Below are positions 4,101 through 63,489 of a stretch of 64,000 bases of DNA, one piece after another. The stretch covers positions 682,001 through 746,000 of the forward strand of contig NW_025767152.1 of assembly GCF_003918875.1 (NCBI RefSeq). Reading direction: 5' to 3'. Within the stretch, counting starts at the first letter, position 1, and every line of letters starts with the position of its first letter. A program made the translations under genes and the position numbers. The notes under the pieces were generated by a model. It had not been told where the DNA came from and searched no databases. It worked only from the letters and a program-made list of their open reading frames with translations. The stretch is from Haliotis rubra. Lineage: Eukaryota.

Positions 4101-4102
4101 AC

Positions 4103-7175: not shown

Positions 7176-8700
7176 CCTGGCATGTTCATGATTGACTCCA
7201 ATGACTGGCGACAACAACCACAGCACCCCTTTAGCTGACATTTTGGTACCCAGAATATTAATCTGTAAGCAAATCTGTTGAAACTATCGGTGTCCGTCGT
7301 TTGCAATAGATAGGCATTAACAGACTTCCACTTGCGAGATACTATATATCACTCATGTGATGACCAAGAGCCATGGGATAAGAGGCGACTATATGGATCG
7401 CTTGGTTCAGGCTACGTGATTTAGTTGACTATATATGATGCTCATGATGTCAATCTCTGGGTTGTCTGGCGAAGACTTGATTATCAACTGACGTTGTCAT
7501 AATCATCACCACCATCCGATGAAGCCAACAACTACATCGACGACCACTGAAAGAGTGCACATTAGTGAGCTTTTAATTCGCCACAGACCGATTTCCTCAA
7601 TGAATGTTTTATAAACCTGTCAGTTTTTCAGTTTTAGTTTCGTTTTCTGTTTTGTATAGATCTTCAAGATTGTGTATATAACAAGGAAATGCACGAGGAT
7701 TCAGCGCTTAAATGATCAAAATGAAAAATAGCTTTGAGTAGTGCACGTGCTTAATGTTTAGAATGGATTTCCACGGGGTAGCAATTATTTCCCTTAGAAC
7801 CCAAATGCTGGTCCTGAGAGTTGAACGAATTGTGGTACCGATGAAGTTCAACGTAAATGAAAAATGCATCTCACGAAACCCATGCAACCTGCGACAGGAT
7901 GCACCTGACTTACTCGATACATGTCATCGTACCCCAGTTACGGAGATCAATCCTCACGATGTCAAACACAGGATTATCTGGTTCAGCTTCGATTATTTAC
8001 GGACAGAATCAACACAATTGATTCAGAGCGGCGTTAAAGAACCCCCAAATCCCCACAATTCTGCTTTCACATTTTCACATTGATGATAAATAGAACTATT
8101 TATGCTTAGACACAAAACAACGTACTACTAAATATTTGAGTAAATTTTGAATGCGGCGGTTAAAAAATATAAATTTAATCACTGAACATTATGCTTATGT
8201 CGTGTCAATCGGTCACACACGCCCTACAGAATAAATTAAGAAAGGAGCTCATCTCCAATCTAGAACGGTCGGGCAAGTCGCATGCGTGATGACATGTAGA
8301 ATTATTATTAACTCCTTTTGGATTATTCATTATAGATCTATATTTAAAAAATAATTCACCTTTATCTCTTCTTAATGACTGTCCAATGGATCATGTAATG
8401 AATCAGTTGTATTATGAATAATACATAGAAAGTAGACTTATTAGCATTTGATTAAAGCAATTAAAATGTATAGAATATGCATGTAAACATTAAATGTTGA
8501 AAGTGAACCATACTATAACACAGCAGGAGAATTAAGAAATTCTAATAATTACCTACTTAGCTAAATGTTAGAAATGGTCAAATATGAGTATCAATTCGTT
8601 TGCGTTTGTCCGAAGCATTCTGTCACCAATTGTGCATTCACAAAATATTATTGACTTAGGGACCGTTCATTATGGCTAGGGGTAAAATGGAGGGGAGGTG

Positions 8701-8866
8701 NNNNNNNNNNNNNNNNNNNNNNNNNNNNNNNNNNNNNNNNNNNNNNNNNNNNNNNNNNNNNNNNNNNNNNNNNNNNNNNNNNNNNNNNNNNNNNNNNNNN
8801 NNNNNNNNNNNNNNNNNNNNNNNNNNNNNNNNNNNNNNNNNNNNNNNNNNNNNNNNNNNNNNNNNN
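8701..8866. other. Assembly gap (N run)
   Basis: Ns. Confidence 1.
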
Positions 8867-18800: not shown

Positions 18801-19239
18801 TTCAACACCCACAAGCTTTGTAATCACTATATATTGAGCTGCAGGTGCAATCTGTTTGTCAGGTGCAACAAGGTTATTACCTAATGTTGCGTTGGGTGCA
18901 AGAAGGTTTCATCTCCTTATTTTGATCCCTGCATTTCGTTACCTCTTCTGTTTCAGGGCACACACTCCTAACTCACATAAAGGCTATGGCTGGCAGAAGC
19001 TGACTGACCAGGTCATCAAGATCATCAGTGATCAGTGCCCATTTGTCGTTTTCATCCTCTGGGGAAACTTTGCTCAGAAAAAGGGCAAACTAATTGATGA
19101 TAAGAAGCACGCAATCATTAACAATGCTCACCCCTCCCCACTAAGTTTTACCAGGTTCGCAGGCTGTAAGTGTTTCTCTGCCACTAATGATGCTCTGCAG
19201 AAGAAAGGGTTCTCTCCCATAAACTGGTCGCTGGAGTAA
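9718..19239 (+). CDS. UNG: Uracil-DNA glycosylase, family 1 (5 exons: 9718-9826, 11378-11601, 13873-13920, 14325-14501, 18957-19239; ~278 aa after correcting exon-4 indels)
   Basis: All family-1 UDG motifs in order: IFPPKEKIFNAF, VVILGQDPYH, PPSLKNIYK, WAVQGVFLLN, VFILWG, HPSPLS. GT-AG introns with phases 1, 0, 0, 2. Confidence 0.93.
11378..11601 (+). CDS. UNG: UNG exon 2
   Basis: Within ORF 11338-11625 (SWTKAL..IFPPKEKIFNAFNLTPIDE); GAG|GTAAAC donor. Confidence 0.92.
11680..12934. repeat. 50-bp minisatellite, ~25 copies, in UNG intron 2
   Basis: Unit TAATTGATAATCTGAAAATATTTTGAAATATTGGGTGGTTAAATTGTCCT, nearly invariant, no spacers. Confidence 0.97.
13074..13316 (-). mobile_element. SINE-like family C, full length
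   Basis: Minus strand runs from CCCGTGAAGATC.GGGTTAGAA to the (CTCA)n tail. Confidence 0.88.
13357..13583 (+). mobile_element. Family B SINE plus 3' extension, bounded by a 15-bp TSD
   Basis: GTATATATATGATAG at 13342-13356 and 13584-13598; A and B boxes present. Confidence 0.9.
13873..13920 (+). CDS. UNG: UNG exon 3 (catalytic VRVVILGQDPYHDDGQ)
   Basis: TTTTTTAG| acceptor, CAG|GTGAGA donor, 48 nt in frame. Confidence 0.95.
14325..14501 (+). CDS. UNG: UNG exon 4 (contains small indels as assembled)
   Basis: SVPDGLAVPPSLKNIYK and SLEKWAVQGVFLLNA in frame; AEGLAF, ELTTDIPGFK and TLTVE appear in shifted frames; |GTAAGT donor at 14502. Confidence 0.85.
14691..14979. mobile_element. hAT-type MITE
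   Basis: Imperfect TIRs TAGAGCTGTGACGATA / TATCGTCCACACCTCTA; 8-bp TSD GTTTCTAT on both sides. Confidence 0.85.
15299..18104. mobile_element. Foldback-like element: two inverted arrays of a 21-bp unit (~15300-15765 and ~17550-18100) around a ~1.8-kb core
   Basis: Left unit TCCTACGTAGGACATAGTATC, right unit is its reverse complement; outer ends TGGTCTCTTTATCTCCTAC and GTAGGAGATAATGATACCA are complementary. Confidence 0.7.
17245..17407 (-). mobile_element. Family B SINE inside the foldback core
   Basis: Same A/B boxes and tail as other family B copies. Confidence 0.8.
18957..19239 (+). CDS. UNG: UNG exon 5 (terminal)
   Basis: TTTCAG|G GCA acceptor; HTPNSHKGYGW..FILWGNFAQKK..AHPSPLS..INWSLE then TAA. 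Confidence 0.95.
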
Positions 19240-22440: not shown

Positions 22441-23693
22441 GAAGATCTTCGTTAGAATTGGTCTTCAGCAACCCATGCTTGTTATGAGAAGCGACGGAGG
22501 GGATCGTTGGTCAGATTGACTAACTTGGTTGACATTCCACTTGCGCTTAGTCATTGAATATATACTCATGGAAATGAATAAGGGAACACATGAAAGTACA
22601 AGTGTTCCTTTATTTATTCTTGAGAGTGGAAGGTCGCGGGTTCGATCCCCGACAGCGTCGTACCAAAAGACGTTAAAATATGGTACTTGTTGGTCCCTGC
22701 CTGGCTCGGCATTAATGGGTACAACAAGGACTGGTTAAACTCAGAGTCAGTATACCATGCTTCACTGCGACATGGTATCTCAGTGGGCTAGCACTATAAA
22801 ACCAGCTTAAGTCTGGGCTAGTACAAGCAGCCTCACACATACACGCGTTGTCATATGAGCCGAAATATTCTCAAGCCGCGACGTAAACCCAATTTCACCT
22901 CACCTCACCTTATTTATACCCAGAATTAGCCCATTTCTGGTGTCCCCTGCCGTGATATTGCTGGAATATTGCTAAAAGCGGCATAAAACTAAACTCAATC
23001 AGTCAGTATACCAAGAATTTCACCCACAGCACAATACATACCTTGTGAAGAAACCTGGAAAAGAATAAAGGAGGCTGTCTGTAATTAATCAAGTCTGGAC
23101 CAGACAATCCAGTGATCAACAGCATGAGCATAGATCTACGAAATTTCAAAATTCCTTTTGTGATGGCATGTGTCAACCAAATCAGTGAGTCTGACTACCT
23201 GATCCCCTCAGTCGCCTTTTATGAGTGAGTTAGTTTAGTTTAACACCGCACTCAGCAATATCCCAGCATATGGCGGCGGTCTGTAAATAATCGAGTCTGG
23301 ACCAGACAATCCAGGGATCAACAGCATGAACATCAATCTATGCAATTTGGATCACGATGATGTGTCAATCCAGTCAGCGAGCGTGACCAGCCGATCCCGT
23401 GAGTAAGCCTCTTACAAGTTTCTGAAGATCAATTCTAACCCGGACCTTCACGGGTGTATGAGGTTTATACAGCAAAATTGATGTTTGTGACGACAGCAGT
23501 CCTAAGCGTATCTAACCCTTATTCCCAGAGGGGCGGTGGGGTAGCCTAGTGGTTCAAGCATTGGCTCGTCATGCGGAAGACCCGGGTTCGATTTCCCACA
23601 TGGGTACTATGTTTGAAGCCCATTTCTGGTGTCCCCCAACTTGATATTGCTGGAATATTGCTAAAAGCGGAGTAAAACCATATTCACTCACTC
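22441..23693. mobile_element. SINE cluster: C fragment 22441-22535 (+), A 22624-22910 (+), B fragment 22930-23007 (+), C pieces 23075-23455 (-), B 23530-23693 (+)
   Basis: Each block matches family A/B/C copies elsewhere; mirrored at 62003-63225. Confidence 0.85.
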
Positions 23694-25657: not shown

Positions 25658-27322
25658 TGGAGTGGAGTGGAGTACAGTCAGCTGTTGGGTGGAGTGGAGT
25701 CAGGTGTTGTGTAGTGTGGAGACCAGTGTTGTGTGGCGAGAAATCATGTGTTGTGTAGAGCAGATCCGGTGTGGAGTGGAGTCAGGTGTTGTGTAGTGTG
25801 GAGACCGGTGTTGTGTGGCGAGAAATCATGTGTTATGTAGAGCGAGGTCAGATGTGGAGTGGAGTCAGGTGTTGTGTAGAGCAGATCCGGTGTGGAGTGG
25901 AGTCAGGTGTTGTGTAGTGTGGAGAACGGTGTTGTGTGGCAAGGAACCAGGTGTTATGTAGAGCGAGGTCAGATGTGGAGTGGAGTCAGGTGTTGTGTAG
26001 AGCAGATCCGGTGTGGAGTAGAGTCAGGTGTTGTATGGTGTGTCCTGTGTTGTGTGGGGCGGAGGCATGTGTTGTGTAGAGCAGGATCAGGTGTGGAGAG
26101 GAGTCAAGTGTTTTGAGGAGTGGAGTCAGGTGTTGCGGGGAGTGGCGTCAGGTGTTGTGTGGAATAGAGTCAGGTGTTGTGGAATGGAGTCAGGTGTTGG
26201 GAGGAGTGGAGTCAGGTGTTGTGTGGAGTGGAGTCAGGTGTTGTGTGGAATGGAGTCAGGTGTTGTGTGGAGTGGAATCAGGTGTTGTGAGGAGTGGAGT
26301 CAGGTGTTGTGTAGAATGGAGTCAGGTGTTGTGTGGAGCAGAGTCAGGTGTTGTGTGGAGCGGAGTCAGGTGTTGGGAGTGGAGTCAGGTGTTGGAAGCG
26401 GAGTCAGGTGTTGTGAGGAGCGGAGTCAGGTGTTGGGAGTGGAGTCAGGTGTTGTGTAGAATGGAGTCAGGTGTTGTGTGGAGCAGAGTCAGGTGTTGTG
26501 TGGAGCGGAGTCAGGTGTTGGGAGTGGAGTCAGGTGTTGGGAGCGGAGTCAGGTGTTGTGAGGAGCGGAGTCAGGTGTTGTGTAGAATGGAGTCAGGTGT
26601 TGCGAGTTGAGTCAGGTGTTGTGAGGAGTGGAGTCAGGTGTTGTGTGGAGCGGAGTCAGGTGTTGGGAGCGGAGTCAGGTGTTGTGAGGAGTGGAATCAG
26701 GTGTTGTGAGGAGTGGAGTCAGGTGTTGTGTGGAGCGGAGTCAGGTGTTGTGAGGAGCAGAGTGAGGTGTTGTGTGGAGTGGAGTCAGGTGTTGTGAGGA
26801 GCAGAGTCAGGTGTTGTGTGGAGCGGAGTCAGGTGTTATGAAGTTGAGTCAGGTGTTGTGAGGAGTGGAGTCAGGTGTTGTGTGGAGCCGGAGTCAGGTG
26901 TCAGGAGGAGCGGAGTCAGGTGTTGTGAGGAGTGGGAATCAGGTGTTGTGAGGAGTGGAGTCAGGTGTTGTGTGGAGCGGAGTCAGGTGTTGGGGAGCGG
27001 AGTCAGGTGTTGTGAGAGAGTGGAATCAGGTGTTGTGTGGAGTGGAGTCAGGTATTGTGTGAAGTGGAGTCAGGTGTTGTGTAGTGAGGTGTTGTGAGGA
27101 GTGGAGCCAGGTGTTGTGAGGAGTGGAGTCAAGTCTTGTGTGGAGCGCAGTCAGGTGTTGGGAGTAGAGTCAGGTGTTGCGTAGAGTGGAGTCAGGTGTT
27201 GTGAGGAGTGGAGTCAGGTGTTGTGAGGAGCGGAGTCAGGTGTTGTGTGGAGCGGAGTCAGGTGTTGTGTGGAGTGGAGTCAGGTGTTGTGTGGAGTGGA
27301 GTCAGGTGTTGTGAGGAGTGGA
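25658..27322 (-). repeat. 20-22 bp minisatellite (~1.65 kb) starting inside the last codons of the LRRC46-like CDS
   Basis: Minus-strand unit TCCACTCCTCACAACACCTGAC; plus strand GGAGTCAGGTGTTGTGTGGAGT. Confidence 0.95.
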
Positions 27323-30400: not shown

Positions 30401-33400
30401 TTATAGTCACATGATTTATCCCACAGGGTAGCGCTAGAAGGTTATAGTCACATGATTTATCCCACAGGGTAGCTAGAAGGTTATAGTCACATGCTTTATC
30501 CCACAGGGTAGCTAGAAGGTTATAGTCACATGCTTTATCCCACAGGGTAGTGCTAGAAGGTTATAGTCACATGATTAATCCCACAGGGTAGCTAGAATGT
30601 TATAGTCACATGATTTATCCCACAGGGTAGCTAGAAGGTTATAGTCACATGATTTATCCCACAGGGTAAGCTAGAAGGTTATAGTCACATGATTTATCCC
30701 ACAGGGTAGCTAGAAGGTTATAGTCACATGATTTATCCCACAGGGGTAGCTAGAAGGTTATAGTCACATGATTTATCCCACAGGTAAAGCTAGAAGGTTA
30801 TAGTCACATGCTTTATCCCACAGGGTAGTGCTAGAAGGTTATATTCACATGATTTATCCCACAGGGTAGCTAGAGCGTTATAGTCACATGATTTATCCCA
30901 CAGGGTAGCTAGAAGGTTATAGTCACATGATTTATCCCACAGGGTAAGCTAGAAGGTTATAGTCACATGATTTATACCACAGGGTGGCGCTAGAAGGTTT
31001 TAGTCACATGATTTATACCACAGGGTAGTGCTAGAAGGTTATAGTCACATGATTTATACCACAGGGTAGCGCTAGAAGGTTATAGTCAGATGATTTATCC
31101 CACAGGGTAGCGCTAGAAGGTTATAGTCAGATGATTTATATCACAGGGCAGCGCTAGAAGGTTATAGTCACATGATTTATACCACAGGGTAGAGCTAGAA
31201 GGTTATAGTCACATGATTTATCCCACAGGGTAGCGCTAGAAGGTTATAGCAACATGATTTATCCCACAGGGTAGCGCTAGAACGTTATAGTCACATGATT
31301 TATCCCACAGGGTAATGCTAGAAGGTTATAGTCACATGATTTATCCCACAGGACAGCGCTAGAAGGTCATAGTCACATGATTTATACCACAGGGTAGCGC
31401 TAGAAGGTTATAGTCACATGATTTATCCCACAGGGTAGCGCTAGAAGGTTATAGTCACATGATTTATCCCACAGGGTAGTGCTAGAAGGTTATAGTCACA
31501 TGATTTATCCCACAGGGTAGCGCTAGAAGGTTATAGTCACATGATTTATCCCACAGGGTAATGCTAGAAGGTTATAGTCACATGATTTATCCCACAGGGA
31601 TAACCATTTTTCAGATGGGTGAACAGAGGCAATTTTGAACAAACTTGCATAACCTGAGGGGAGGCCACATGTATCAAATGTGTTTCGTTGTGGGGCAGGA
31701 CTGAAGTTCTAGAAACACTCAGGAGTCAACACGGTCACCCATCCAATTACTCTCCGCACACAACGTTGGTTAACTTTAACTGATTTGTGACCTGAGCTCT
31801 ATGCACAGGACCACGTGCCGCAACATATGATATAAACAAACAAACAAACTCCACTGACCCAGTTCTGTTACAGATACAGCAGTATTCTTCCATATCAAGT
31901 TTAAATAAAGAAAGATTTTTTAAGTTGTGAGTTATGTACAAGATGTAGTTTGTCAACATTATGAAGCCAGTATCTCACCGGTAGTCTGGCATCTGAGTAC
32001 AGGGGTTACCAGACAGGTTCAGCAGTATCAGAGACTGGGGGAATTCATCTGGAACAGTATCAGGTAAATCAATCATTGGTGTCTTGCTATAAAAAATGCA
32101 GGGGTGGAAATAACTTTAAAATTGCTAATGTACTCTGGTACAGTTGCACATGTAAAATCACTTACCCTGATAATTTTTCCACTATACTGGCTTATTTTCT
32201 TGGTGATTTTTTAAATAAACAACATAATTAACATTGGAAAGTCAACTGGACACCGGTACAGCGTGACATACAAATTTGCTAGCCCAACAGAAAAAAGCAC
32301 TGGACTGGGGCGTCAGGCAATGAGTTATTTCCACCCCTGAAATGTCAGGTAAACTGATCATCAGTGATCAACAGCATGAGCATTGATCTACGCAATTGGG
32401 ATATGATGACATGTGTCAACCAAGTCAGCGAGTCTGACCTACTGATTCCGTAAGTGGCCTTTTACGACAAGCAGGGGTTGCTGAAGATCAATTCTCACCC
32501 GGACCTTCACGGATGGTAAACTGATAATTGGTGTATTGTTATGAGTGAGTGAGTGAGTTTAGTTTTATGTCACACTCAGCAATATTCCAGCTATATGGCA
32601 GCGGTCTGTAAAAAAGAGTCTGGACCAGACAATCCAGTCATCAACAGCATGAGCATCGATCTACACAATTGGGAACCAATGACTTTTGTCAACCAAGTCA
32701 GCGAGCCTGACCACCCGATCCCGTTAGTCGCCTCTTACGACAAGCATGGGCTACTGAAGTTCAATATTTTAACCTGGATCTTCACGGGTGATTTGTTATG
32801 AAAGAGTGACAGGTAAACTGATTATCACTGAATGGGTATGAAATAATGACAGGTAAATTGATCACCAGTGTACTGACATGAAACAGTGGCTGGAAAACTG
32901 ATCATCAGCATTTTGCTTTGAAACAATGGCAGGTACACATGTAGAACTGGTCATTTATTTTGAAGCCTATACAATATGCAGCTTTGGACGAGAGAAGCTG
33001 GTCACATGACCGTGACAGCTGACATTCATAAGTGTATGGATGACACATGTTGATATTCAGATGCTTTTCATGAGACTGTATTCTTAAAATGACGTAAACA
33101 CAGACGGACAACCTTCTGTGAGTGACAATCAGAAGTTGGTGTGGTGAACAACAGGGAGGTGAGGTGACATTGGGTTTAACATCATGCTTGAGAATATTTC
33201 GCTCAGATGACGACGTGCATGCGTGTGTATGTGCGGCTGCTTGTACTAGCCCAGGCTTAAGTTGGTTTTATAGTGCCATCCCACTGAGATACCATGCCCG
33301 GTGAAGCATGAATACCCCACTCAGACACATTATACTGACTCGAGCGACCAGTCCTTGTTGTACCCATTAATGCCAAAGCGCCAGGCAGGGACCAACAAGT

Positions 33401-35813
33401 ACCATATTTTAGCGTCTTTTGGTATGATGCGGTCGGGGATCGAGACCCACGACATTCGCTCTCCAGGCAGGCGGCTCTAACCACTACACCGAGGTGATTA
33501 TGAGTGAACAGGGGAGAGTTACATGGATATACCACTAATAATAATAAGTCATCTTCTATAGCGCACAGTCTCCAAACACCAAGTGATTGCTCGCATCGCT
33601 TAATCAGAATCTGTAACACTGCCGCTGTTACAGGTCATTGGCTCCCTCCCTCTGCAAGCAGTCTGCGTTCTGCTGTTTATTTTGTTGACAGTTACATAGA
33701 CAGATTCTTTAATACAAATGCATAAAATCGGTGATTTACAATGTGATTAGGTTGTCTGACAAAACATCCACTTGCACAGTTTGAGATCGATTGGATCATT
33801 GGATGAAGAGATATTTACAAAAAACGGGTCCACATGCATTTCATGCCAAACTATACAAGATCAGGAGACTACTATAATCCATTCACATCAAGAGACTCCA
33901 ATAGACCATGAACAGAGACCAAGGATATTACATCCCCACTGCCTACCACCAACTCATCACCAAGCAATCTTAATTCCATTATTCTCCTGTCTGTCATATC
34001 ATTGACTTCCCCTACCCATTAATCCCTCCTTCATTAATTCTGCTTGTGTAACAACTGCCTTCTTGTGTATACATCCTCCAATCTTGTAGATCAAGCTTAA
34101 TAATTGTGTAAAGAACAACCAATTTACTGTTCAAATTTTACTAGTAACATATAGCCTTGCCTGCAGTATTGTACATCACTTGCTTAAAATTTTGTTTGTA
34201 GCTACACTGAAACATTGCTCATATTAATGATAAAAAGATTTATATCCATAAAACTCTCCTCGTTGTTCACAGACACCCTACTTCCACATTCCTGGGGACA
34301 CCCCTGTGCATTCCCTAGCATGCCTAAAAATACAGAGGCATTATTTCAGATCATTTAGGGCTTTAATCTTGAACTAGTACCTTGAGAAAACACACAAGGT
34401 TGCTCCCTGAATTGTTGGTCTCCAAACACAGAGCTGGGGTGGCACCTTACCAATGTCAAACTGTGCTATGCGGTTGTCTGAGAGGTCAAGGAAGAGAAGC
34501 TTGGAGAGTTTACTGAGGTTCTCCACCTTCTGTAAGAGGTTGCCGGCCAGTGTCAGAAACTGTAAGTTTTTCAGGCAGTCGAGGTTGCTGATGCGTGTGA
34601 TCCGGTTCTGGAAGCAAGTACAACTGTCCAAATCAAAATCTGCTTTCTCTGGCATGTACAGCATTTGATTCTTTTGAAGGAAATACAAAGTTTGTGACAT
34701 GAAAGACAGGAACACAACACTTGAAACTACCTTGACCAGTGTTGTCTACGGAAACATAAACTTGAACTTGGACACTGTGTAGAGAGTGATTTTTGGGGAC
34801 ATGTTCCATGAACTTACAGAAACCAAGATTTCACTGCGTCCATCACTGAGTCTATGATGTTACCGTGCCTCTGATGCAACTGTGTCTCTGATGCCACTGT
34901 GTCTCTGATGTCACTGTGTCTCTGATGTCACTGTATCTATGACACCACCATGTACATGACATCACCAATGATGTCATTAAGTCTATGATGTCACTGTCTC
35001 CGATGTCACTGAATCTTTGCTGTCATTTGGTCTGTGATGTCACTGTGTTTGTGATGTCATTGAGTCCATGATCACACTGTGTCTACGATGTCACTAAGTC
35101 TCTGATGTCACTGTCTCTGATGTCACTATGTCTATGATGTCACTATGTCTCTGATCTCACTGTGTCTATGATGTCACTGTGCCTATGACGTCACTGTGTC
35201 TATGATGCAACTGTGTCTATGATGTCACTATGTCTATGATGTCAGTGTGCCGATGACATCACCGTGTCTATGACATCACTGTGTCTATGACATCACTGTG
35301 TCTATGATGTCACTGCGTCTATGAGGTACCTGCGTTAAGGATGTCACTATGTCTATTATGTCACTGTGTCTCTGATGTCAGTGTGTCTATGATGTCAATG
35401 AGGTTATGATGTCACTGTGTCCATGATCTCACTGTGTCTATGATGTCAATGAGTCCATGATCTCACTGTGTCTACAAAGTCACTGTGTATATTAAACATC
35501 ACATTAGAAGTGACTATCATCCAGTGCTCATAATCTGTACACCCCTACCCTAGTGTTTAAAGTCCCTTTATCATATATCAATGAAACTCACCTGAATTTC
35601 CCTCTAACCTTATGCCACTTCTAGCAATACTCCAACAATATGCCGACAGGGGACACCAGAATTGGCCGGAGACAAACAGGTGCAAAACTATGAAATTCAT
35701 GAACACCAAGCTGTGAAATTCATGAACACCAGAAATGGGCTTCACACATTATACCCATATAGGCAATTGAACCCAGGTTTTAGAGATGACAAGCTAATTA
35801 AACACTTTAACCA

Positions 35814-46818: not shown

Positions 46819-49800
46819 TCATGATGAAGAGGACCTAAGAAGATTCACAATGGCTTTGTTGAGCCATTTTTCTGCAAAAGAGACATACTTCTCTAATCCC
46901 CGTTGACCCTGGCCGAATTGTTTCAAGGAAAGGAGGTGTTTCACTATAGACATGTTACCTCCCCAACAAGCCAACATCAAGCAGTCACTGTTGCCTGTAT
47001 CAGTTAGTGACAGATCAGCTCCCTCCGACACAAGAAGATTGTATACATCATATTGTCCCCTTGAAGCTGCCATCATAACTGCTGACTGACCATCAGCTCC
47101 CCCTTGCCTGTTGATGTCAAATGTTTCCAAGGAAAGGAGGTGTTTCACTATAGACATGTTACCTCCGCAACATGCCAATTTCAAGCAGTCACTGTTGTCT
47201 TTATCAGTCAGTGACAGATCAGCTCCCTCCGACACAAGAAGATTGTATACATCATAGTCTCCTCTTGAAGCTGCCATCATAACTGCTGATTGATGCAAAA
47301 TCGCCCCTTGCAAGTTGATGTTAAATATTGCCAAGGAAAGGAGGTGTTTCACTATAGACATGTTACCTCCCCAACATGCACACATCAAGCAGTCACTGTT
47401 GAATTTATCAGTCAGTGACAGATCAGCTCCCTCCGACACAAGAAGATTGTATAAATCATAGTGTCCTCTTGAAGCTGCCATCATAACTGCTGATTGATGG
47501 AAACTCCCCCCTTGACTGTTGATGTCAACTGTTTCCAAAGAAAGGAGGTGTCTCACTAACAACATGTTACCTCCCTCACATGCCAACATCAAGCAGTCAC
47601 TGTTGTCTTTATCAGTCAGTGACAGATCAGCTCCCTCCGACACAAGAAGATTGTATACATCATAGTGTCCTCTTTCAGCTGCCATCATAACTGCTGATTG
47701 ATGCAAACTCCCCCCTTGCCTGTTGATGTCAAATGTTTCCAAGGAAAGGAGGTGTTTCACTATAGACATGTTACCCCCCTCACATGCCAACATCAAGCAG
47801 TCACTGTTGTATTTATCAGTCAGTGACAGATCAGCTCCCTCCGACACAAGAAGATTGTATACATCATAGTGTCCTCTTGAAGCTGCCATCATAACTGCTG
47901 ATTGATGCCAAACCTCCTCTTGCCTGTTGATGTTAAATGTTTCCAAGGAAAGGAGGTGTTTCACTATAGACATGTTACCTCCGCAACATGCCATTATCAA
48001 GCAGTCACTGTTGAATTTATCAGTCAGTGACAGATCAGCTCCCTCCGACACAAGAAGATTGTATACATCATAGTGTCCTCTTTCAGCTGCCATCCTAACT
48101 GCTGATTGATGCAAACTCCCCCCTTGCCTGTTGATGTCAAATGTTGCCAAGGAAAGGAGGTGTTTCACTATAGACATGTTACCTCCGCAACATGCCAATT
48201 TCAAGCAGTCACTGTTGTCTTTATCAGTCAGTGACAGATCAGCTCCCTCCGACACAAGAAGATTGTATACATCATAGTGTCCCCTTGAAGCTGCCATCAT
48301 AACTGCTGATTGATGCAAAATCCCCCCTTGCCTGTTGATGTTAAATGTTGCCAAGGAAAGGAGGTGTTTCACTATAGACATGTTACCTCCCTCACATGCC
48401 AACATCAAACAGTCACTGTTGTATTTATCAGTCAGTGACAGATCAGCTCCCTCCGACACAAGAAGATTGTATACATCATAGTGTCCTCTTGAAGCTGCCA
48501 ACATCAGTGCTGTTTGTTTCATCAATCCTCCTTGCATGTCAAGATTAAAGGCTTCACACGTCAACAAATATGTTACAACTGATACATGACCATTGATACA
48601 ACCTATTCGAAAAGTGTTCATCCTGTCATACTTAGTCGTGTTAGTTAAATCTGCTTTGTGCGAGACAAGAAGTTTGAGGATTTCCACCTGCCCTGATTTA
48701 GCACATAAAATTGCAGGAGTATTTCCATCTTCGTCACCAACATTGATCAGATGTTGAAACTGTTTAAGGAGAACGTTTACTATATCTTTGCTTCCTGATT
48801 TACATGAAAAATGAAGACAATTGCAATGTCGATTGTCTGTCGCTGAAACATCAGCTCCCTCTTTCAGTAGGAAGTTGAACACATCCAGCTGTCCTGCCTC
48901 AGCAGCAACCATCAGCAGTGTTTGTGGTCTTTTGTCCTCCTGTCAACATCAAAACTGTCTAGCTGTTTGAGTGCAGCAGCAGTACGCTGAAGATACAGTA
49001 GATTGCCACTCTGTATACAGCCTATGATACTATCGTAGAAGTCACTGACAATAGAAGTTGAAAGGTCTGTCTCTTTACACATCAGTGACACCGAGTGTTC
49101 AAACAGTGAATGGTTAGATGAAACTGAGACCCAATACAGAAAGCATTCACCGGATTTCGTATCTTTTCTGTGAACAATCTCGGGCAGGTCTGGCATAATT
49201 TGTGTCAAGAAGGAGGAGGCTATTTGGACGTTGCTGAATATAGAGTGACCAACTGTCCATCTAAAACACCCTTCTCGGACACCTTGCACCAGTCTGGAGA
49301 TCACTAAAGGATGTAGACTGGAAGTGATGTAGATCATGTTTGTGACATCATCAATGTGGGTTGACTGAAAGCTAGCATCCCTGTTAAGTCTGACTCTTTC
49401 ATATAGCAACTGCAGGGAGCAATGTTCCAGTAACAACACGTCATTGAGATGGCCCAAAGCACAAGCTGCAGCGTCGTGGATGGATGGATGAGAGAAGGAG
49501 GCAACATGATTCTCCACTGTACAGTAGGTGCCGATAAAGTTGCGGATCTCCTTACCGATGTCTGTTCGATTGCAAGACGCTATCTCCTCCTTTACAACCT
49601 GAAACAATGCTGCACATTTTGTCCCCGACTTGAAGGAGACAAGGTCAACTTCCCCACACAGGACGAGGGAGAACGAGGCTGCTGATCTGCTGCTACCTTC
49701 ACGGATAATGGTGTCAAGGTCACCTCTCAGATAGGTCACAGGGTTCTGAAAGAAGTTAGTGATTTTGTGTACCTGGAAGGCTGGGTTGGTACAGTAAAGG

Positions 49801-50503
49801 TGACAGATGAGTGGAAACCCAAACACGTTGTCATGTAATTGTGTAATTGTGTTCTTGTCCTGACTGGAGATATCAAACATGTGATTTCTTTTCCAGACGG
49901 ATTTTATTATAGATTCCTTTTCCTTAGTAGTCAGAGTAGTTGTGGTCATATTAATAACACTCACAGGGTTGAAGAGGTTAATTTTAAACTGGTGAAGTCT
50001 GTTACATCCTTCATTCCAGTTGTATGTTCTAGATGTGAAGATGAAGCGGAGTTGTAGAGGCTTTTTGAATCATCATCACCTAAAGTCTCATTCTTCTTGT
50101 CTGCATTCAATTTTTCAGCTCTCTCTTCCTCTTGTCCTGTTGCTCCTTCTGGACTGAGATGTTTACTATATCATCAGCCAGGGCGGTCAACACTTTCTTG
50201 ATTTTCTGCAGATGGGATGGAAATGCTACAGAACCAAACATATCATCAAACACAATCAGCATGTCACACTGTCGTTGAATTATTGTATCTGCTTGAAACT
50301 CTTCAAGATTTTCAACAAACACAACTTCATATTTCTTTTGCAGATATTTCTCACATATCTTGAGAGCAATGCTTGTTTCCCATCGCCAGGAGCTCCACAA
50401 ACTGCCACATGGTTGTGTTTTTTCAGGAGTTCTTCTGCTGTGTGGAGTGTGTGAATTCCCTCAAACACTTCATTCAGCTGCTTGATCCTGATGCTAAGAG
50501 ATG
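46819..50503 (-). CDS. Terminal exon of a STAND-class (nSTAND3-like) P-loop NTPase + ~20 ankyrin repeat protein; ~1228 aa after restoring four 1-nt A-run losses
   Basis: Acceptor TTTTCAG| at 50504. Walker A VAVCGAPGDGK(T), Walker B MLIVFDDMFG, sensor FIFTSR, GFPL (GxP) motif and winged-helix F.HPSIHD, then ankyrins. ORFs 50280-50519, 50107-50400, 48912-49964 and 46819-48912 fuse when one A is added at each of four T-runs (3685+4 = 2+3x1229). Confidence 0.88.
46920..48516 (-). repeat. Coding tandem array: 8 x 204-bp (68-aa) di-ankyrin units
   Basis: QSAVMMAASRGHYDVYNLLVSEGADLSLTDKxNSDCLxxACxGGNMSIVKHLLSLxTFxINRQGGxxH repeated 8 times (last unit incomplete) with very high DNA identity. Confidence 0.97.
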
Positions 50504-50825
50504 CTGAAAACAAGAACACCAGAAAACTAGAGGACGTCTTCCCAGAAATTGTAACACCAGATGGATTTGGTGTTTAAGTAAAATAGATGCATAATTATAC
50601 ATACAATCTACAATACATTTTCACATAAGGCTAGGGACTAAACAAAAAGCAATATATTTTAATTTTTTAAATATTTCTTCTCCAATAAAACTAGTAACAA
50701 CATCAATGTACAAAGTATGCTAACTTACAGTTAGGTTCATTCCTAATCGGGTCCTACTGAAGACAGATGCTGCACAGTTATGGGAGACATGTTTAGGCTG
50801 TGAGTGACCCTTCACTATTAGTTAC

Positions 50826-50909
50826 CTTGTGATACACAGCCACGATGTCCGGGATTCCCCAATGAAGTGTGAGATGAGTTGGACAGATCATACTGGGATA
50901 CAGAACAAC
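50826..50909 (-). CDS. STAND-ankyrin gene internal exon (GCSVSQYDLSNSSHTSLGNPGHRGCVSQ)
   Basis: TTGTTCCAG| acceptor and AG|GTAACT donor; 84 nt, phase 1-1, fits both neighbouring exons. Confidence 0.6.
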
Positions 50910-51542
50910 CTGGAACAAGAAACAAAATTTGAATGCGTTGAGCAGGTGAGAGTGGAATACTGAACAATCTGGAACAAGACAACACCGTTGAAGGACTTTG
51001 ACAGGTCACACTGCGGTACAGAACAATCTGAAACATGAAAACAACGTTGAGTGACGTGGACAGGAATTGCTGAGATACTGAACAACCTGGAACAAGCAAA
51101 CTGCTGACTATGTTCTTAAAGTGTGCTTTCAGTTTTGGAAAATTGATCATGGTAAATTGTGATCAATCAGAGCTATCAGACGGAATGACAACGAACAATA
51201 ACACAGGACCTAAGCCCAAACAGACATTAAACATTTTAATAACAGTATGTGTGAAGATGATCAATATTTTTAACATATGAAACCAGAATGTTCTTTAATC
51301 GCTATCCTTTAACTAACTTACATCACATTTCATTCTAGACTTTGATTAAGTCCTGTAGGATGTGTAAATATGTTTTTGACCACATATCAGAGATATACTA
51401 TACTGAGAGAAATCTAGAGTAGAACCAGTCCTATTTTGTATTTAACTCTGGCAGACACTCTATCCAAGTACAGTTGGCAGCCATCATGATGGGGAAAATA
51501 TGCTCCAAAACAAGGAGACAGTGATGGTAGGGGAAGATTTAC

Positions 51543-51873
51543 CGATGTGGTTGTGTGTTATTGGAGAACTGGATTGAATTCCCTGTCGCTGGTTCTCCTC
51601 CATTACCGCCGGAGGGTCTGTTCGTTGTAAGGCCATAACACCTTCATGAATTGGGTTGAATTGCATCCCCTCCTTTTGGCTCCCTTCTATTACCACCGGA
51701 GTGTCTGTTGATGGTACGGCGATAACACCTTCTTGTGTTGAGGAAGGGTTGAATTGCATACCCTGCCGTTGACTCCATTTTCTTACCACCGGAGTGTCTG
51801 TTGATGGTAAGGCCAAAGCATCATCTTGTGTTGAGGAAAGGTTGGGTTGTCTCCCCTGCTGTTGACTCATCAA
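51543..51873 (-). CDS. STAND-ankyrin gene upstream exon: three ~30-aa S/T/P/Q-rich repeats (5' boundary uncertain, possibly the acceptor at 51960)
   Basis: ORF 51484-51873; repeats SQxQGMQFNPSSTQEGVxAxPSTDTPVV; CG|GTAAAT donor phase 1. An in-frame stop at 51907-51909 leaves the start unresolved. Confidence 0.55.
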
Positions 51874-52157
51874 GAGTTGATGTCGATGGGGACTGTATGC
51901 ACTCTGTCACATCTGGAATGTTTGTCAGTGGTCCAGTTTCCATTCTTCATGAGACCATTCTGTAAATGTAGTCAATAGTTTATCATATGTCTATGTATTT
52001 CTCAATAAATATTGTCATTAAAAATTAAAATTACAACCAGAAATAATCGGACATGACAAGGTTCATCTTTTTCAGGCTCACAAATTCAGATACGCCAAAT
52101 AAGTTTACGTTTGAGGGTAATAATGAACATGGTCAAATTTAAAACTCAAAATCATGC

Positions 52158-52455
52158 TAGTGGTTAGAGCGTCCGCCCGGAGAGCATCATACAAAAAAGA
52201 CGTTAAAATATGGTACTTGTTGGTCCCTGTCTGGCGCTCGGCATTAATGGGTACAACAAGGACTGGTCGGCTCAGAGTCAGTATAATGTGTCTGAGTGGG
52301 GTATTCATGCTTCACTGCGGCATGGGCTAGCACTATAAAACTAGCGGAAATCTGGGCTTGTACAAGCAGCCGCACATACACATACACAGGCATGCACGTC
52401 GTCATATGAGCGAAATATTCTCAAGCATGACGTTAAACCCAATTTCACCTCACCC
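52158..52455 (+). mobile_element. tRNA-derived SINE, family A (internal deletions)
   Basis: TAGTGGTTAGAGCGTCCGCCCGGAG..AAATATTCTCAAGCATGACGTTAAACCCAATTTCACCTCACC. Confidence 0.85.
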
Positions 52456-54569
52456 CTCCTCAAAATCATGCAAGATGAAAATCGAAATGATGAAATAAAC
52501 ATATATGGTAATGTCAGGAGTATGCAGGAGAAAATTCTGACCCTATTTTTCATTTTCATCCACCAAATTGACAATTAATAAGTATGAGTAGATTTTTGCA
52601 AAAGGCCAAGGAGCTAGCAAGTTTGAGATCGCTTGGGCCACTAAGTTTTCAACATGACCAACACCAGGCTTGGACATATGCAAACCGCCACATAGCTTCA
52701 TAGATCTTAACATCAACGCCAGAATTACCAGTTATGAAGATCTGCTGAAACAAACAACCATCTTACAAAGTATACCGATTGATAGAGCCACTTTGCAAAA
52801 ACTTGGGAAAGACACTCGACATAGAATGGACAGTTTTACGTGGATGCACGTGTGTTAGATCACATCAGAGTGTATGGGTCACCGGCGACAGTCTCTACAT
52901 TCTATACTGAATATATTATATTATGTTACTAACCCATTCAACACCACAGGTCGAATAATCAGCCACAACGTTATGAGTCCCCAGACACCGGAGGCTGATT
53001 AATCGGCAGGCAGTAGTCACGTCAAAATGAGACATGCTTTTAGGAACCTACCTGACTTTTGATTCATATATCAAATCTATCATTTAACAATGTCTGAAAA
53101 CACTTATTAAATTTCAATTTATCATATATTATCAACCAGAATTAAAATTATAAACTATTTTTTCGCAATGTTATTGAAAACAACGATTCTCGGACACATC
53201 CTTCGACAGCGGGTCCTAATAACATTGTCAAAGAGCAAAATAACGATGTTTCCAGGAAATTATTAAATAAATTGAATAGACTAATGAATGAAATCAACAA
53301 CAGCATTCATAAAAATTGATAAAGCGTACGTATAAAATTACAATTTCCATCTTTTTGTGCGATCGTGTAATGCAAGTCAAGTCACTGACAAGTGACATCT
53401 CGGCTCTCGCCGCCTCAATCTTCACGCTCGGACACGATGTTTTAATGCTGAAAATACATACATGAAGCATTTTGTCACGGGTTAATAACTTCGCGGCACG
53501 ATACACGTCAAATAAGTTCCATAATTTGCGTGGTGGCTGCCTGCTTAATATGTTCAGAATAGCATTGTTTCACCCAAAAACGTGTCCGAATCTAAAGTTT
53601 CCGTTTGCGAGGACGGTATCCATTGCCTTAATATGATTGGCTGCCTTAGGTCACGTGTCTGATTTTTGACCAATCGACTACCTATAGCGGACTGTGGCGA
53701 AAAAAGCGTCATTAGAAACCAATCTTTATCAATAAAATCGCTTCTTACAACTGTGAAAATACTCTCGGCAAGGGTACAGGCATATTGTTGATGTTCAAAG
53801 CTTTCGAGACGATGCCCGACTAAACAATAATATTGAGAGGTAACAGTTGACAGCGGAAAACAGTTCAGTCCAAGGCACGGAGACAGAGACATAAAACAAC
53901 ATTAAATTATGAACAACTTGCAGATGGGGATACTGTCATTATGTACGCCCGCTCCACCCGTCCATACAACCACGGAGAGAGTAACCAGTATTCTACGTCC
54001 GTCCTCGTACAAGAACCAGTATTCTACGTCGTCCTCGTACAAGAAGGGGGAGAACTCGTGCAGTAACAGTCCATTATATTTCCACATCACCACAGTCGTG
54101 GACAGGTTAAAATCGGGGCTCAATTTACACTCTTGTGTTCCAAGTTATATGTTTCATTTTCTAGTTATCGTTACGTTACCATATGTTGGGACAAGCTAAC
54201 ATAATCTTTGCATATTAATGTTAGATACCTTTATTCTAAGAATCGTAGTCTAAGATCTATCCATGGGATACAAAAGTCATCTTTACAATACAGTGCATTG
54301 AGAAAGGTAAAAAATCGATGAATGTCACTCGACTGATGCAGCTGAGAATAATTACAATAGAATTTGTTTTCAAGACTTATTTTCATCTTCATAATTGTCG
54401 CTGTAGTATATCAAAGAGGTTTCATTCCTTTATATATATGCGAATGTTATAACTATGAGAACTACTCATACAACTACGGTGTTATGGTTCTAGTTTTGCT
54501 GTTCATTAATGGCAACTTTGCTCGTTAACTCTCACGTTTTTTGGCTGCAAATGTTGACTTTAGAAAATA

Positions 54570-59340: not shown

Positions 59341-59844
59341 GTCCACCCGTCCATACAACCAGGAAGTTACCCGGGTTCTATTTTCGTTATCGTGTATGAA
59401 GGGGGACAACTCGTACAGTAACAGTCTATTATATATCGACATCACCTTACGTTGTGGATAGGTTCAAATCATGGTTCTCGTCAATACTCTTCTTTTAATA
59501 CTTTGTTTTAGTTTGTATTCCATATTTGGTTACCGACTTACAAACTATCCTAATCTATGTATGGTATTTTCATGGATCCGAGGACGAGGTCAATTCATTG
59601 GATTCCTATGGCATGCTTGCCGCATGATTTGACTGTTAATGACATTAGGCACTGTATGGGCAGACCTATCGGCGTACAGTTTGTAAAACATGACAGCAGA
59701 TTTGAGAAAACCTTCATAGAAGACACGTGTACTATTTGACATCGAACATGTGATACACGCGTTTACTGTATAACCAACATATATTACGGTATTTAATTTA
59801 TTATATACCTGTTTTAGACACAGTAGTCCTTGTATCCGACTGCG

Positions 59845-60090
59845 CGTGAACACACAGACAGAAACACGCACACACACACAGATAAACAGAAACACGCACA
59901 CACACAGACAGAACACGCACACAGACAGACAGAAACACAGACACAGACATAAACGCAAACACAGACAGAAACACGCACACAGAGACTGAAACACGCACAT
60001 ACAGACAGAAACACACGCACACACACAGACAGGCACACGCACACACACACAGGAACACGCAGACGCACGCACACATACATACACACACAA
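59845..60090. repeat. CA-rich compound microsatellite
   Basis: ACACACAGACAGAAACACGC-type units. Confidence 0.93.
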
Positions 60091-60500
60091 ATATTCAAAG
60101 AAACCGCACATACACAAGGATTAGACAATGTACTGGATGAATATGCACAGTTCAGTAAAAGAAAAGCCGACATTAGCAAAAGGGTTAAACAACAAACAAA
60201 CAAATCACATGGCCAGGCAAGCGTGTGCAGGAGAACGTATTGACGATGAATATCATACTCAACGTCGTCAGTAGCCTGTTGGCGAGAACGCTCAAGGTGC
60301 ATTATCGCTTAAAGCAACCTAAAACCATACCCACTCACTTACTGATAGGTTCATTGTAAATGTCACTTTTCAGATCATTGTTCTTTTCGTTGCTCCGTTC
60401 ATCGTTCAAATCATTGTTCATGTCACTGTTCAGTTCATTAAACATGTCACAATTCCTTTCCCTGTTCATGTCCTTTTGCGAACACGCCGATGGTTGAACG

Positions 60501-63489
60501 TACCCCGATCTGTATTACCTGGGTAAGATCACATATCCCAAACTGTATTACTTGGGTAAGGGCACATATCATGATCTGTATTACCTGGGTAAGGGCACAT
60601 CTACTGATATCATCAGGTTGTTCTTTTGTTCTGAGACCTTATATAATTTGTTTCTTGGTTTAAGCTTCTGCCAACATTAAAAGTCAATAATTCAAAAACA
60701 ATGTCCGAGTTGACCAGGCCTCGAAGATATATGGGCCATACCACTTCTTGTTGTATTTATACCTTTACATGAATCCATCCAAAACGAACAAAAGCATATT
60801 TTTTATTTATCATTCTATGTCATGGTGACAAGTTATTTCTTGAGACGTGTTTACATGTATCATTTATTTATTTGTGTTGTTGAAATGTATATATTCAGTA
60901 TCATTCCATTATAGTTCAATGTTGATAAAAAATCCATGTTTTATATGTTTAAAATGATAAGATTCATTTAGTCGTCAGAAATGAACAAGTTATGTTCAGG
61001 CCCAAATCCTTGAAGTATGTAAAATTGTATAATTGCCAAGAAATATATAGGCACAAAACAATGACAATATACTATAATAAGCTAAACACAGGTGTTGGGC
61101 TATAAACAGATATTGCACTGATCGATATTCATCACTTGTATCAGCTCTACATATCTGAGAATCTCATTTGAATATGGTACATGGGAATTCTGTTTATCTG
61201 ACTACATTTCTGACAAAATGAACACGATTTATACATCCAAATTGAAAAAACTTCACAAATGAAAATTCCCATTTAATTAAATTAAAATTACTTAATGGTA
61301 TGACAGTTAGTTTCAGTTGTCTTAAGAGCTTATTATTGCTTATTCCAGCAGGATCTAAGAAAGAGCTCATTTAGTTCTGATTGCTCATTTGGAAGGAGAT
61401 ATAATTCTCCGTTTCTGTGACTTTGGCATGCCAATCTGTCATATACTGGACCGAGACACAAATGTGTTATCAATATGTGATTGTATCTAGCGCTGGCTAA
61501 TCAGAAATATCATCGATTGGAAATATTATTAATGATTATCAATATGAAAATTGTGTGATCAATAATATCGTATATCAACCTTTGTGATAGAAAAAAAATC
61601 ATAATTTTCTCACACAATACCAATTTAGGACATTATTCGTAATCTGCTTCTAAATTGTGTTCAGAATGTAGTTTTGTTAATAATCACAGCAAAAACATGT
61701 CCGCACTCCCAGTGATGTGAAATATATTCCTTTATTTCAGATAGTTTTGGCATTTTGGCTCAAAGTTACATCTCCGATAATTATCGATAATCGATTGATA
61801 TTTTTTAGTTGATGATTATCAATTTCTACAATCTATATCATCAATAGCCAGACCTAACTGTGTGTTCTCAAAGTATTGTTAAACAACCAACGTTTATATT
61901 TTTTTACTTTGAAATAAAGGGTTTTGCATCTGTCTTCTGTTGTGTATTGTGTTCTTATGAATCACAGATACAGTTCTATTAGTGATTTGAATTCTGGGAA
62001 TAGAGTGAGTGAGTGAATATGGTTTTACTCCGCTTTTAGCAATATTCCAGCAATATCAAGTTGGGGGACACCAGAAATGGGCTTCACACATTGTACCCAT
62101 GTGGGAAATCGAACCCGGGTCTTCCGCTTGACGAGCCAATGCTTGAACCACTAGGCTACCCTACCGCCCCTCTGGGAATAGGGGTTAGAGATGCTAGGAC
62201 TGCTGTCGTCACAAACATCAATTTTTGCTGTATAAACCTCGTACACCCGTGAAGGTCCAGGTTGGAATTGATCTTCAGTAACTTGTCGTAAGAAGCGACT
62301 CACGGGATCGGCTGGTCAAGTTCGCTGACTGGATTGTCACGTCATCGTATCCAAATTATGTAGATCGATGTTCTTGCTGTTGAACCCTGGATTGTCTGGT
62401 CCAGACTCGATTATTTACAGACCGCCGCCATATAGCTGGGATATTGCTGAGTGCTGTGTAAAACTAAACTAACTCACTCATAAAAGGCGACTGAGGGGAT
62501 CAGGTAGTCAGACTCACTGATTTGGTTGACACATGCCATTACAAAAAGAATTTTGTCTGGTCCAGACTTGATTAATTACAGACAGCCTCCTTTATTCTTT
62601 TCCAGGTTTCTTCACAAGGTATGTATTCTGGGTATACTGACTGACTGAGTTTAGTTTTACGTCGCTTTTAGCAATATTCCAGCAATATCACGGCGGGGGA
62701 CACCAGAAATGGGCTAATTCTGGGTATAAATAAGGTGAGGTGAGGTGAAATTGGGTTTTACGTCGTGCTTGAGAATATTTCGATCATATGACGACGTGTG
62801 TGTATTTGCGGCTGCTTGTACTAGCCCAGACTTAAGCTGGTTTTATAGTGCTAGCCCACTGAGATACCATGCCGCAGTGAAGCATGAATACCCAACTCAG
62901 ACACAGTATACTGACTCTGAGCCGACCAGTCCTTGTTGTACCCATTAATGCCGAACGCCAGGCAGGGACCAACAAGTACCATATTTTAACGTCTTTTGGT
63001 ATGACGCGGTCGGGGATCGAACCCGCGACCTTCCGCTCTCGAGAATAAATAAAGGAACACTTGTACTTTCATGTGTTCCCTTATCCATTTCCATGAGTAT
63101 ATATTCAATGACTAAGCGCAAGTGGAATGTCAACCAAGTTAGTCAATCTGACCAACGATCCCCTCCGTCGCTTCTCATAACAAGCATGGGTTGTTGAAAA
63201 CCAATTCTAACGAAGATCTTCACTGTATCCAGCTATTTCAACATCTGATGGTCACCAATCTGGTCAAGCAGTAATTAGTCGGTATGATACATGACCTAAA
63301 GTTTTTAAGAATGACACATACAAAACTGTCGCATAGTGTTTTATATAAAAATCTTTCACAAAACTGTTCATTAAAAACATGGGGGAAAATTACAAAAAGA
63401 AATATAGTCTCTACAAATGTATATGGTTAATGTTACATCAAAACAACATGTGTAAAAATAACTATATCAGTTTACAAGCAGTAATAAAA
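60501..63489 (-). repeat. Inverted segmental duplication, copy 2 (partner 22173-25229)
   Basis: Contains 3 units of the 31-32 bp minisatellite, the same unique DNA, MITE, SINE cluster and UNG 3'-end sequence, all in reverse. Confidence 0.95.

Follow-up and report, generated by a model that had tools for sequence, protein, structure and literature searches.

A stretch of 64,000 nucleotides from the abalone Haliotis rubra (assembly GCF_003918875.1, contig NW_025767152.1, positions 682,001 to 746,000 of the forward strand; hereafter the window) contains on its minus strand, at 51870-46819, a three-exon gene encoding an nSTAND3-type STAND NTPase (rather than one of NACHT or NB-ARC type) followed by ankyrin repeats. 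The gene is part of a large expansion specific to Haliotis. Taken together, the observations are best explained by a three-exon Haliotis nSTAND3-ankyrin gene that works as a STAND receptor and whose frameshifts are mostly assembly error, and we hold this overall explanation with moderate confidence. A reading of the letters without database searches (the sequence-only reading) had proposed an immune receptor of this kind hidden by frameshifts; the homology, expression and modelling evidence presented below bears on each part of that proposal.

Gene structure and expression

The list of open reading frames (ORFs) contains four long open pieces in alternating frames on the minus strand between 51.9 and 46.8 kb. 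The first terminates in ..HNHVAVCGAPGDGK, the second runs TSIALKICEKY...CDMLIVFDDMFG..., the third ..LRFIFTSRTYNWNEGC...FGFPL...ASFSHPSIHDAAACA..., and the fourth, of 707 codons (48942-46822), encodes ankyrin repeats. Two further coding exons upstream were located by tblastn with the conserved N-terminal segment of homologues, and Logan contigs of four public runs (X1, X3, X7 and X8, under two organism labels) were aligned to 48520-52000. Coding exon 1 (51870-51541) is an ORF with tblastn homology to the N-terminal repeats of the related proteins P0011, P0016, P0017 and P0026; its donor lies at 51541, where the loose end of an RNA-like contig of X3 matches the start of exon 2. Coding exon 2 (50910-50826; ..CSVSQYDLSNSSHTSLGNPGHRGCVSQ), a conserved junction segment with the donor AAG/GTAACT, has 100% tblastn matches to P0011, P0013 and P0016. 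A spliced contig of X3 joins 50503 to 50826, with CT..AC ends that are GT..AG on the gene strand, and thereby defines intron 2 (50825-50504, 322 nt). The same contig backs the acceptor of exon 3 (50503-46819), which runs to the stop codon and encodes the NTPase module in full as well as the ankyrin array; the single exon of about 3.7 kb that had been read from the letters is thus exact.

X3 displays zero depth across both introns and therefore behaves as RNA, and in four RNA-like runs from one study about 0.6 of the sampled words of the exon-3 NTPase region are present. The gene is transcribed and spliced. Reading was taken from the in-frame ATG at 51870 and yields a protein of about 1370 residues, in which neither a signal peptide nor a membrane segment was found and which is predicted to be cytosolic. 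A chance ORF or a transposon origin is ruled out by the homology and the splicing evidence. No second copy of the gene was found in the 64-kb window, where positions 2739-3006 and 8701-8866 are runs of N.

Intron 1 contains a 59-bp tandem repeat of 3.5 copies (50894-51101) that duplicates the acceptor region of exon 2, so that ..LVPGCSVSQ.. appears twice. Its copy number may be variable, because joints skipping parts of it are seen in the DNA-like runs X7 and X8.

Frame breaks in exon 3

Exon 3 contains four frame breaks. Three had been counted previously; the K/E-rich linker at 50170-49964 needs two frame changes, because the stops of both flanking frames overlap. When the best-supported indels are taken from 48520-52000, the contigs show a one-base insertion, a plus-strand T lengthening a T run, behind 48920, 50051, 50110 and 50375, which are exactly the positions of the breaks. 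Break 1 (50375-50376) falls on the Walker A lysine, where the window has AAA and the contigs AAAA; the insertion is carried by 795.9/795.9 of the depth in X1, 28.4/28.4 in X3, 922/1094 in X8 and 40/108 in X7. Break 2a (50110-50111), in the K/E-rich linker, is A5 in the window and A6 in the contigs, with the insertion in 688/983 of the depth in X1 and in all of it in X3 and X8. At break 2b (50051-50052), directly before LRFIFTSR, and at break 3 (48920-48921), at the junction between the NTPase module and the first ankyrin repeat, the insertion occurs in all four runs, at the latter site with a depth of 806.9/806.9 in X1 and 49.7/49.7 in X3.

The insertion-bearing contigs otherwise follow the window almost letter for letter, at 0-2 mismatches per 180-490 nt. 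Record 16 of X3 (50021-50505, 491 nt, 2 mismatches, 3 gaps) unites three of the corrections on one RNA-like contig, record 10 of the same run covers 48855-49044 with 1 mismatch and 1 gap, and record 6 of X1 has 2 mismatches and 1 gap. With N placed at the four breaks (X in the protein) and the read-supported splice sites, the gene forms a stop-free frame of 1367 codons, and there is no substitution-type stop codon in the approximately 4.1 kb of coding sequence. Contigs of X1 and X3 also reveal a compensated indel cluster in the helical domain (49645-49677; +C, +CC, -1 and +A, net +3), which changes about 8 codons: the window encodes SAASFSLVLCG, while the contigs and all homologues have about SAALILLVLCG. 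This cluster is a further sign of local consensus errors in the assembly. Uniform single-base deletions, a compensated cluster and hardly any substitutions constitute the signature of long-read consensus error, and the frameshifts are therefore likely to be, for the most part, uncorrected single-base deletions of the assembly. As a biological statement, the idea of a receptor hidden by frameshifts is contradicted at all four breaks by near-identical short-read contigs, RNA-like ones included.

Could the breaks instead be the lesions of a true pseudogene or null haplotype, with the intact contigs coming from another allele, individual or species, or from a paralogue about 99.5% identical? Some observations point in this direction and weigh against an assembly origin. 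Record 21 of X7 matches 50013-50190 with 0 mismatches and has the insertion at 50051, yet keeps the window state at 50110. The insertion is missing from part of the depth at 48920, 50051 and 50375 in X8 and at 50051 and 50375 in X7, and the contigs are Logan assemblies, not raw reads of the assembled individual. Many contigs are 90-95% identical to the window, which means that close paralogues exist, and pseudogenes are common in large immune-type families. We nonetheless regard a pseudogene as unlikely. X1, the DNA-like run in which the locus is best represented, carries the insertion throughout its depth at three of the four sites; depth counted as lacking it elsewhere may stem from contigs that end at the site. 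A decaying copy would oddly have accumulated only 0-2 substitutions besides the breaks and not one stop codon by substitution, and all four lesions are alike, each a plus-strand T missing from a T run, which together with the compensated cluster is what long-read consensus error looks like. The 50110 break in particular may be a real, segregating null allele, because record 21 of X7 preserves it.

The nSTAND3 module

The ordered motifs that had suggested a STAND protein all lie on the minus strand in the proposed order. The core of the nucleotide-binding domain, delimited by Pfam and by motifs, occupies 50396-50028 and includes the Walker A motif GAPGDGK (50396-50376), of which the T of GKT is readable only past the frame change, the Walker B motif LIVFDD (50259-50242) and the sensor-1-like FTSR (50039-50028). 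Motifs and the structural model place the helical domain and the winged-helix region at 49820-49473, with the GxP motif GFPL (49820-49809) in the former and FSHPSIHD (49496-49473) in the latter. P-loop, Walker B, GxP and winged-helix histidine make up the classic STAND motif set, and the STAND NTPases were reportedly defined by Leipe et al. in 2004. The present protein has the P-loop, the GxP helical domain, the winged-helix histidine (at the MHD or FxHxS position) and, C-terminally, superstructure-forming repeats.

Conservation of the module was assessed in an alignment of 41 sequences with 19-82% identity. Walker A residues G56, G59, G61 and K62 are invariant in these relatives, as is H361, the histidine of FSHPS, and T63, D106 and D107 are conserved in at least 90% of them, as are G250 and P252 of the GxP motif.

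The nSTAND3 profile (PF20720) matches three of the frame pieces in order, at profile positions 7-55, 31-94 and 104-151, with scores of 25.4, 27.6 and 15.7 bits (E 1.3e-5, 2.8e-6 and 0.013); the gathering cutoff of this Pfam model is 27.2 bits. The frame breaks split the module, so no single nSTAND3 score can be given for the window gene; for its closest intact relatives the score is 68-77 bits, and for those further removed 55-181 bits. Neither NACHT (PF05729) nor NB-ARC gave a match up to E=1 with the window pieces or up to E=0.01 with four close relatives. The earlier assignment to an nSTAND3-like, non-NACHT class therefore agrees with the profiles, and an ordered match of three pieces to one Pfam model, together with homologues at E 1e-107, is far beyond chance.

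The structure of the module, proposed as a check on the assignment, was predicted with AlphaFold for P0011, the closest intact relative (82% identical), using 41 aligned sequences. The model has a mean pLDDT of 87.7 and a pTM of 0.84; it replaced a first, poor model built from 17 close sequences (pLDDT 66.7). The GxP segment is helical in the model, and H361 is predicted to sit between a beta-hairpin (350-359) and a helix (362-375). A Foldseek search of the PDB ranks solved STAND proteins first: the top match is EfAvs5, a SIR2-STAND protein (9jap_A, E 1.5e-8), and it is followed by SAMD9, NLRP2, a wheat resistosome, the AVAST5 filament, NLRP5-containing lattices, the NLRP3 NACHT domain, MalT and NOD2. 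These alignments span about 550-630 columns with TM-scores of 0.2-0.45. Rigid-body alignment covers only the nucleotide-binding domain and the lid (residues 8-281) and gives Avs5 a VIA Z of 13.2 over 201 residues.

The ankyrin array

The ankyrin array (48918-46909; Ank_2 in Pfam, E 4.7e-129 on the fourth open piece) comprises about 20 repeats, the number estimated from the letters. Four divergent repeats come first and are followed by eight double-repeat units of 68 residues (approximately 48552-46920), so that 16 of the roughly 20 repeats sit in near-identical units. At the DNA level the units are a 204-bp tandem repeat of 7.8 copies with 91% matches. Their DNA identity is 83-97%; protein identity averages 83%, a mean that rises to 85% for units 2-8, with 93% for the best pair, over about 540 residues in total. 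The differences are concentrated in a few columns, just before the first helix of repeat one and at positions 3, 9, 10 and 13 of repeat two. In ankyrin complexes and designed ankyrin proteins these positions lie on the binding face. Among the units the overall pN/pS is 1.07. The same type of unit recurs, in arrays of differing length, in the paralogues P0024, P0026, P0019, P0020 and P0025.

The N-terminal repeat and the search for an effector

Exon 1 encodes three copies of a Q/S/T-rich repeat of about 31 residues (QxQGxQ...STQ(D/E)G...PSTDTPVV), the DNA basis of which is a 93-bp tandem repeat inside the exon (51868-51653, 2.3 copies, 82% matches). The copy number of this repeat ranges among paralogues from 0 to about 17. 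No Pfam domain was found in exons 1 and 2, scanning ten paralogues with Pfam in their N-terminal extensions revealed no effector domain, and no upstream effector exon was found within the window. The sequence-only reading had seen no effector and had considered that 5' exons might have been missed: two 5' exons do exist and the protein contains no effector domain by Pfam, but as a source of an effector the exons disappoint, encoding a low-complexity tandem repeat.

An N-terminal effector might also derive from an exon still further upstream, and a candidate is provided by an RNA-like contig of X3, whose letters past 51961 encode, in the sense of the gene, NLWGNIAQE, a uracil-DNA-glycosylase motif; a uracil-DNA-glycosylase-like exon would then be spliced onto 51959, and a consensus acceptor (ttacag) is present at 51961/51960. 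The nearest match to these letters in the window is an exon of UNG type at 19054-19081, with 3 mismatches in 28. We consider this origin of an effector very improbable. The UNG-like frame meets a stop after some 30 codons of exon 1, a TGA in frame sits immediately 5' of the conserved MET start, no exon of UNG type is found upstream in the window, and none of the homologues has a UDG domain. The extension is known from a single contig, which may be a chimeric transcript, the product of a paralogous locus or an artefact. The only similar sequence of the window is a UNG-like last exon on the opposite strand (18856-19239, plus; ..FVVFILWGNFAQKKGKLI..HPSPLS..).

A family expanded in Haliotis

A word search retrieves homologues from H. 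rubra and H. rufescens that are 47-60% identical (E 1e-107) and possess the conserved N-terminal segment. Two word searches yielded 23 and 42 proteins, about 55 distinct clusters at 90% identity, all of them from H. rubra, H. rufescens, H. asinina and H. cracherodii, and at least 12 members lie on one 61.5-Mb scaffold of H. rufescens. The family is therefore multi-copy; counting paralogues had been suggested earlier as a check. By the NTPase module the closest relatives are P0011 (H. rubra LOC124273568), at 82%, and P0195 (H. asinina), at 78%. In the RefSeq paralogues P0011, P0195 and P0014 the module is 76-82% identical to that of the window gene, and the exon-2 junction peptide, the type of N-terminal repeat and the ankyrin arrays are the same, whereas the numbers of N-terminal repeat and ankyrin units differ; none of them is similar enough to the window gene to count as identical with it.

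Annotations of the family already exist in four abalone genomes, with Pfam nSTAND3 recorded for its proteins. Their source names are 'uncharacterized protein', 'ankyrin-3-like', 'mask-like', 'alpha-latroinsectotoxin-like' and 'serine/threonine-protein phosphatase 6 regulatory ankyrin repeat subunit A/B/C-like', which bears out the expectation that annotation pipelines would label such proteins by their ankyrin repeats. A literature search on nSTAND3 in animals, on ankyrin or NLR expansion in Haliotis and on invertebrate STAND-ankyrin proteins found no study of the family.

An exhaustive HMMER search with a profile of 17 sequences matched 921 cluster representatives at E<=1e-3, of which 334 reach E<=1e-10 and 40 reach E<=1e-30. 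The sampled representatives down to about 1e-50 are all from Haliotis, as are most of the weaker ones sampled; the others come from Gigantopelta aegis (a gastropod), Tegillarca granosa (a bivalve) and one ENA record, and all three combine nSTAND3 with ankyrin repeats. These distant proteins agree with the wider mollusc family that had been envisaged.

Some relatives possess additional domains. A DZIP3-type HEPN domain directly precedes the second nSTAND3 module of P0070 (Tegillarca granosa), and P0052 (Haliotis rufescens) ends in an IRS-type PTB domain; both could serve the wider family for output or as adaptors. In a sister subfamily represented by P0043 and P0046, the protein starts with a signal peptide, an EGF-like ectodomain rich in Cys and a membrane helix. 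These EGF-TM-nSTAND3-ankyrin proteins of abalone share with the window gene the NTPase family and the ankyrin array and are likewise expanded, whereas the window protein is devoid of the signal peptide, the EGF-like ectodomain and the membrane helix.

Comparison with known STAND systems

The nearest characterised relative is Avs5, a SIR2-nSTAND3-TPR protein that protects Pseudomonas against jumbo phage (bioRxiv 10.1101/2025.07.08.663546). Avs5, or AVAST type 5 (PDB 9jap, 9nc9), shares the PF20720 NTPase with the window gene and matches the module as a whole best in structure, and in both the NTPase is followed by a helical-repeat sensor. Sequence identity is, however, only about 11-12%; Avs5 carries SIR2, whereas the window protein has neither SIR2 nor any other enzymatic N-terminal domain; the repeats of the latter are ankyrin, not TPR, Sel1 or PPR; and the window gene contains introns and belongs to an animal, while Avs5 is bacterial. 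PADLOC, applied to the relatives, recognised no Avs or other named defence model and returned only the candidate PDC-S73 (E 1e-9 to 3e-11). Lacking SIR2 and a PADLOC match to Avs, and having ankyrin repeats, the window gene is not a member of the Avs5 system.

Fungal NLRs offer a second comparison. They possess highly conserved internal ANK, TPR or WD repeats that are polymorphic in number and have sites under selection on their concave face (Dyrka et al. 2014, PMC4986451). Repeats are counted as highly conserved there when identity exceeds 85% over at least 100 aa, and such repeats are rare in animals, at 0.8% of repeats (PMC4986451); the units of the window gene stand at this threshold. Both the fungal NLR-like STAND proteins and the window gene join a STAND NTPase to ankyrin repeats that are about 85% identical within a gene, and both families are large and lineage-specific, with varying repeat number and variable hairpin or inner-helix (binding-face) residues. 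The fungal proteins have NACHT or NB-ARC and usually a defined N-terminal effector (HET, PNP_UDP or prion-forming motifs), in place of which the window gene has nSTAND3 and an N-terminus of Q/S/T-rich tandem repeats.

With the animal NACHT-LRR proteins (NOD1/2, NLRPs, NLRC4) the window gene has in common the STAND order, P-loop, GxP motif and winged-helix histidine, and the leading structural matches of the P0011 module include NLRP2, NLRP3 and NOD2. Unlike them, the window protein has no NACHT match, no leucine-rich repeats (LRRs) and no CARD, PYD or Death domain.

Other features of the window

A dispersed repeat of about 220 bp occurs at 52176-52400, 62796-63015, 33212-33438, 3851-4054 and 22647-22843, in copies that are 79-87% identical, and is probably a short interspersed element (SINE) or another transposon-derived element; ORFs with GLTSCLRIFRSYDDVHA.VCVCAAACTSPD recur at 3731-4135 and 52341-52574. 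The block at 26028-26610 (plus; GC 0.50, strong G skew of +0.48) consists of tandem repeats that give SGVRCCVEWSQVLCG.. in two frames, and looks like a minisatellite rather than a gene. At 34374-34715 (minus) lies an ORF with LRR motifs (..LKNLQFLTLAGNLLQKVENLSKLSKLLFLDLSDNRIAQF..), probably an exon of an unrelated LRR gene. The low-complexity ORFs at 6914-7306 and 59590-60302 (both minus) include one with poly-Asp runs and two that overlap, are rich in Cys and Val and derive from GT/GTGTGC microsatellites; none of these ORFs is likely to be a gene.

Possible mode of action

What could be the mode of action of such a protein? Its domain order leads from the Q/S/T-rich repeat of variable number through the nSTAND3 module, in which a nucleotide-binding domain, a GxP helical domain, a winged-helix region and a second helical domain follow one another, to the roughly 20 ankyrin repeats. 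By analogy with other STAND receptors, the ankyrin array would hold the switch off and bind a ligand through its variable concave face; binding would release the autoinhibition and permit ADP/ATP exchange and oligomerisation, and the N-terminal repeats, once clustered, could recruit a separate effector partner. Such a partner is supposed because the protein itself lacks an enzymatic domain. A role in non-self recognition or innate immunity is suggested by the expansion, by the clustering on one scaffold and by the diversifying repeats.

Several further points weigh against the explanation as a whole. A conserved start of the 'MET..' type (METGPL), resembling that of the paralogues, is found at 51943 and is out of frame with the exon-1 repeats. 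The pN/pS among ankyrin units is 0.46 outside and 2.14 within the variable columns, a contrast that is circular, as the columns were picked by their variability. In rigid-body alignment Avs5 ties with proteasomal and Clp AAA+ ATPases, with Z of about 13 in both cases, and the fold evidence by itself is therefore no proof of STAND membership; searching PDB sequences with a profile from the family alignment gave nothing significant, only P-loop noise and a designed repeat protein. The immune role, finally, is read from architecture and evolutionary pattern only.

An intact gene might instead encode a housekeeping or developmental STAND/ankyrin scaffold or regulator, in roles akin to those of Apaf-1, MalT or ankyrin adaptors. 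STAND NTPases act in apoptosis and transcription too, no effector domain is detected by Pfam in the window protein, and the PTB domain at the end of the P0052 paralogue is a signalling domain. Housekeeping genes, however, would not be expected to form dozens of divergent, clustered and lineage-restricted copies, or to have repeats that vary in number and are nearly identical within the gene, with differences mainly at surface positions; among solved STAND proteins, moreover, the antiphage Avs5 matches best in structure. A housekeeping or developmental role thus appears improbable, about as much so as a pseudogene, and the explanation that we favour remains an intact receptor gene.

Implications

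Single-base deletion errors in the assembly can make intact genes look like pseudogenes, and 'broken' copies in this genome need checks at the level of reads before they are counted. The dozens of nSTAND3 genes labelled as ankyrin proteins could be a substantial uncounted part of the intracellular sensors of abalone, farmed animals that suffer from herpesvirus, Vibrio and withering-syndrome disease, and searches restricted to NACHT-LRR proteins would miss the nSTAND3-ankyrin family. Near-identical ankyrin units that vary at a few positions recall the way in which fungal NLRs are described to diversify. A bolder proposition, to which we assign a distinctly low probability, is that abalone possess a large repertoire of cytosolic and membrane-anchored nSTAND3-ankyrin proteins that diversifies by reshuffling of near-identical units whose binding-face residues are hypervariable, in the manner of fungal NLRs, and signals through the N-terminal repeat, for instance as a polymerising or condensate-forming adaptor that replaces the enzymatic effector. 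If true, this would represent an animal system of non-self recognition independent of the NACHT-LRR receptors.

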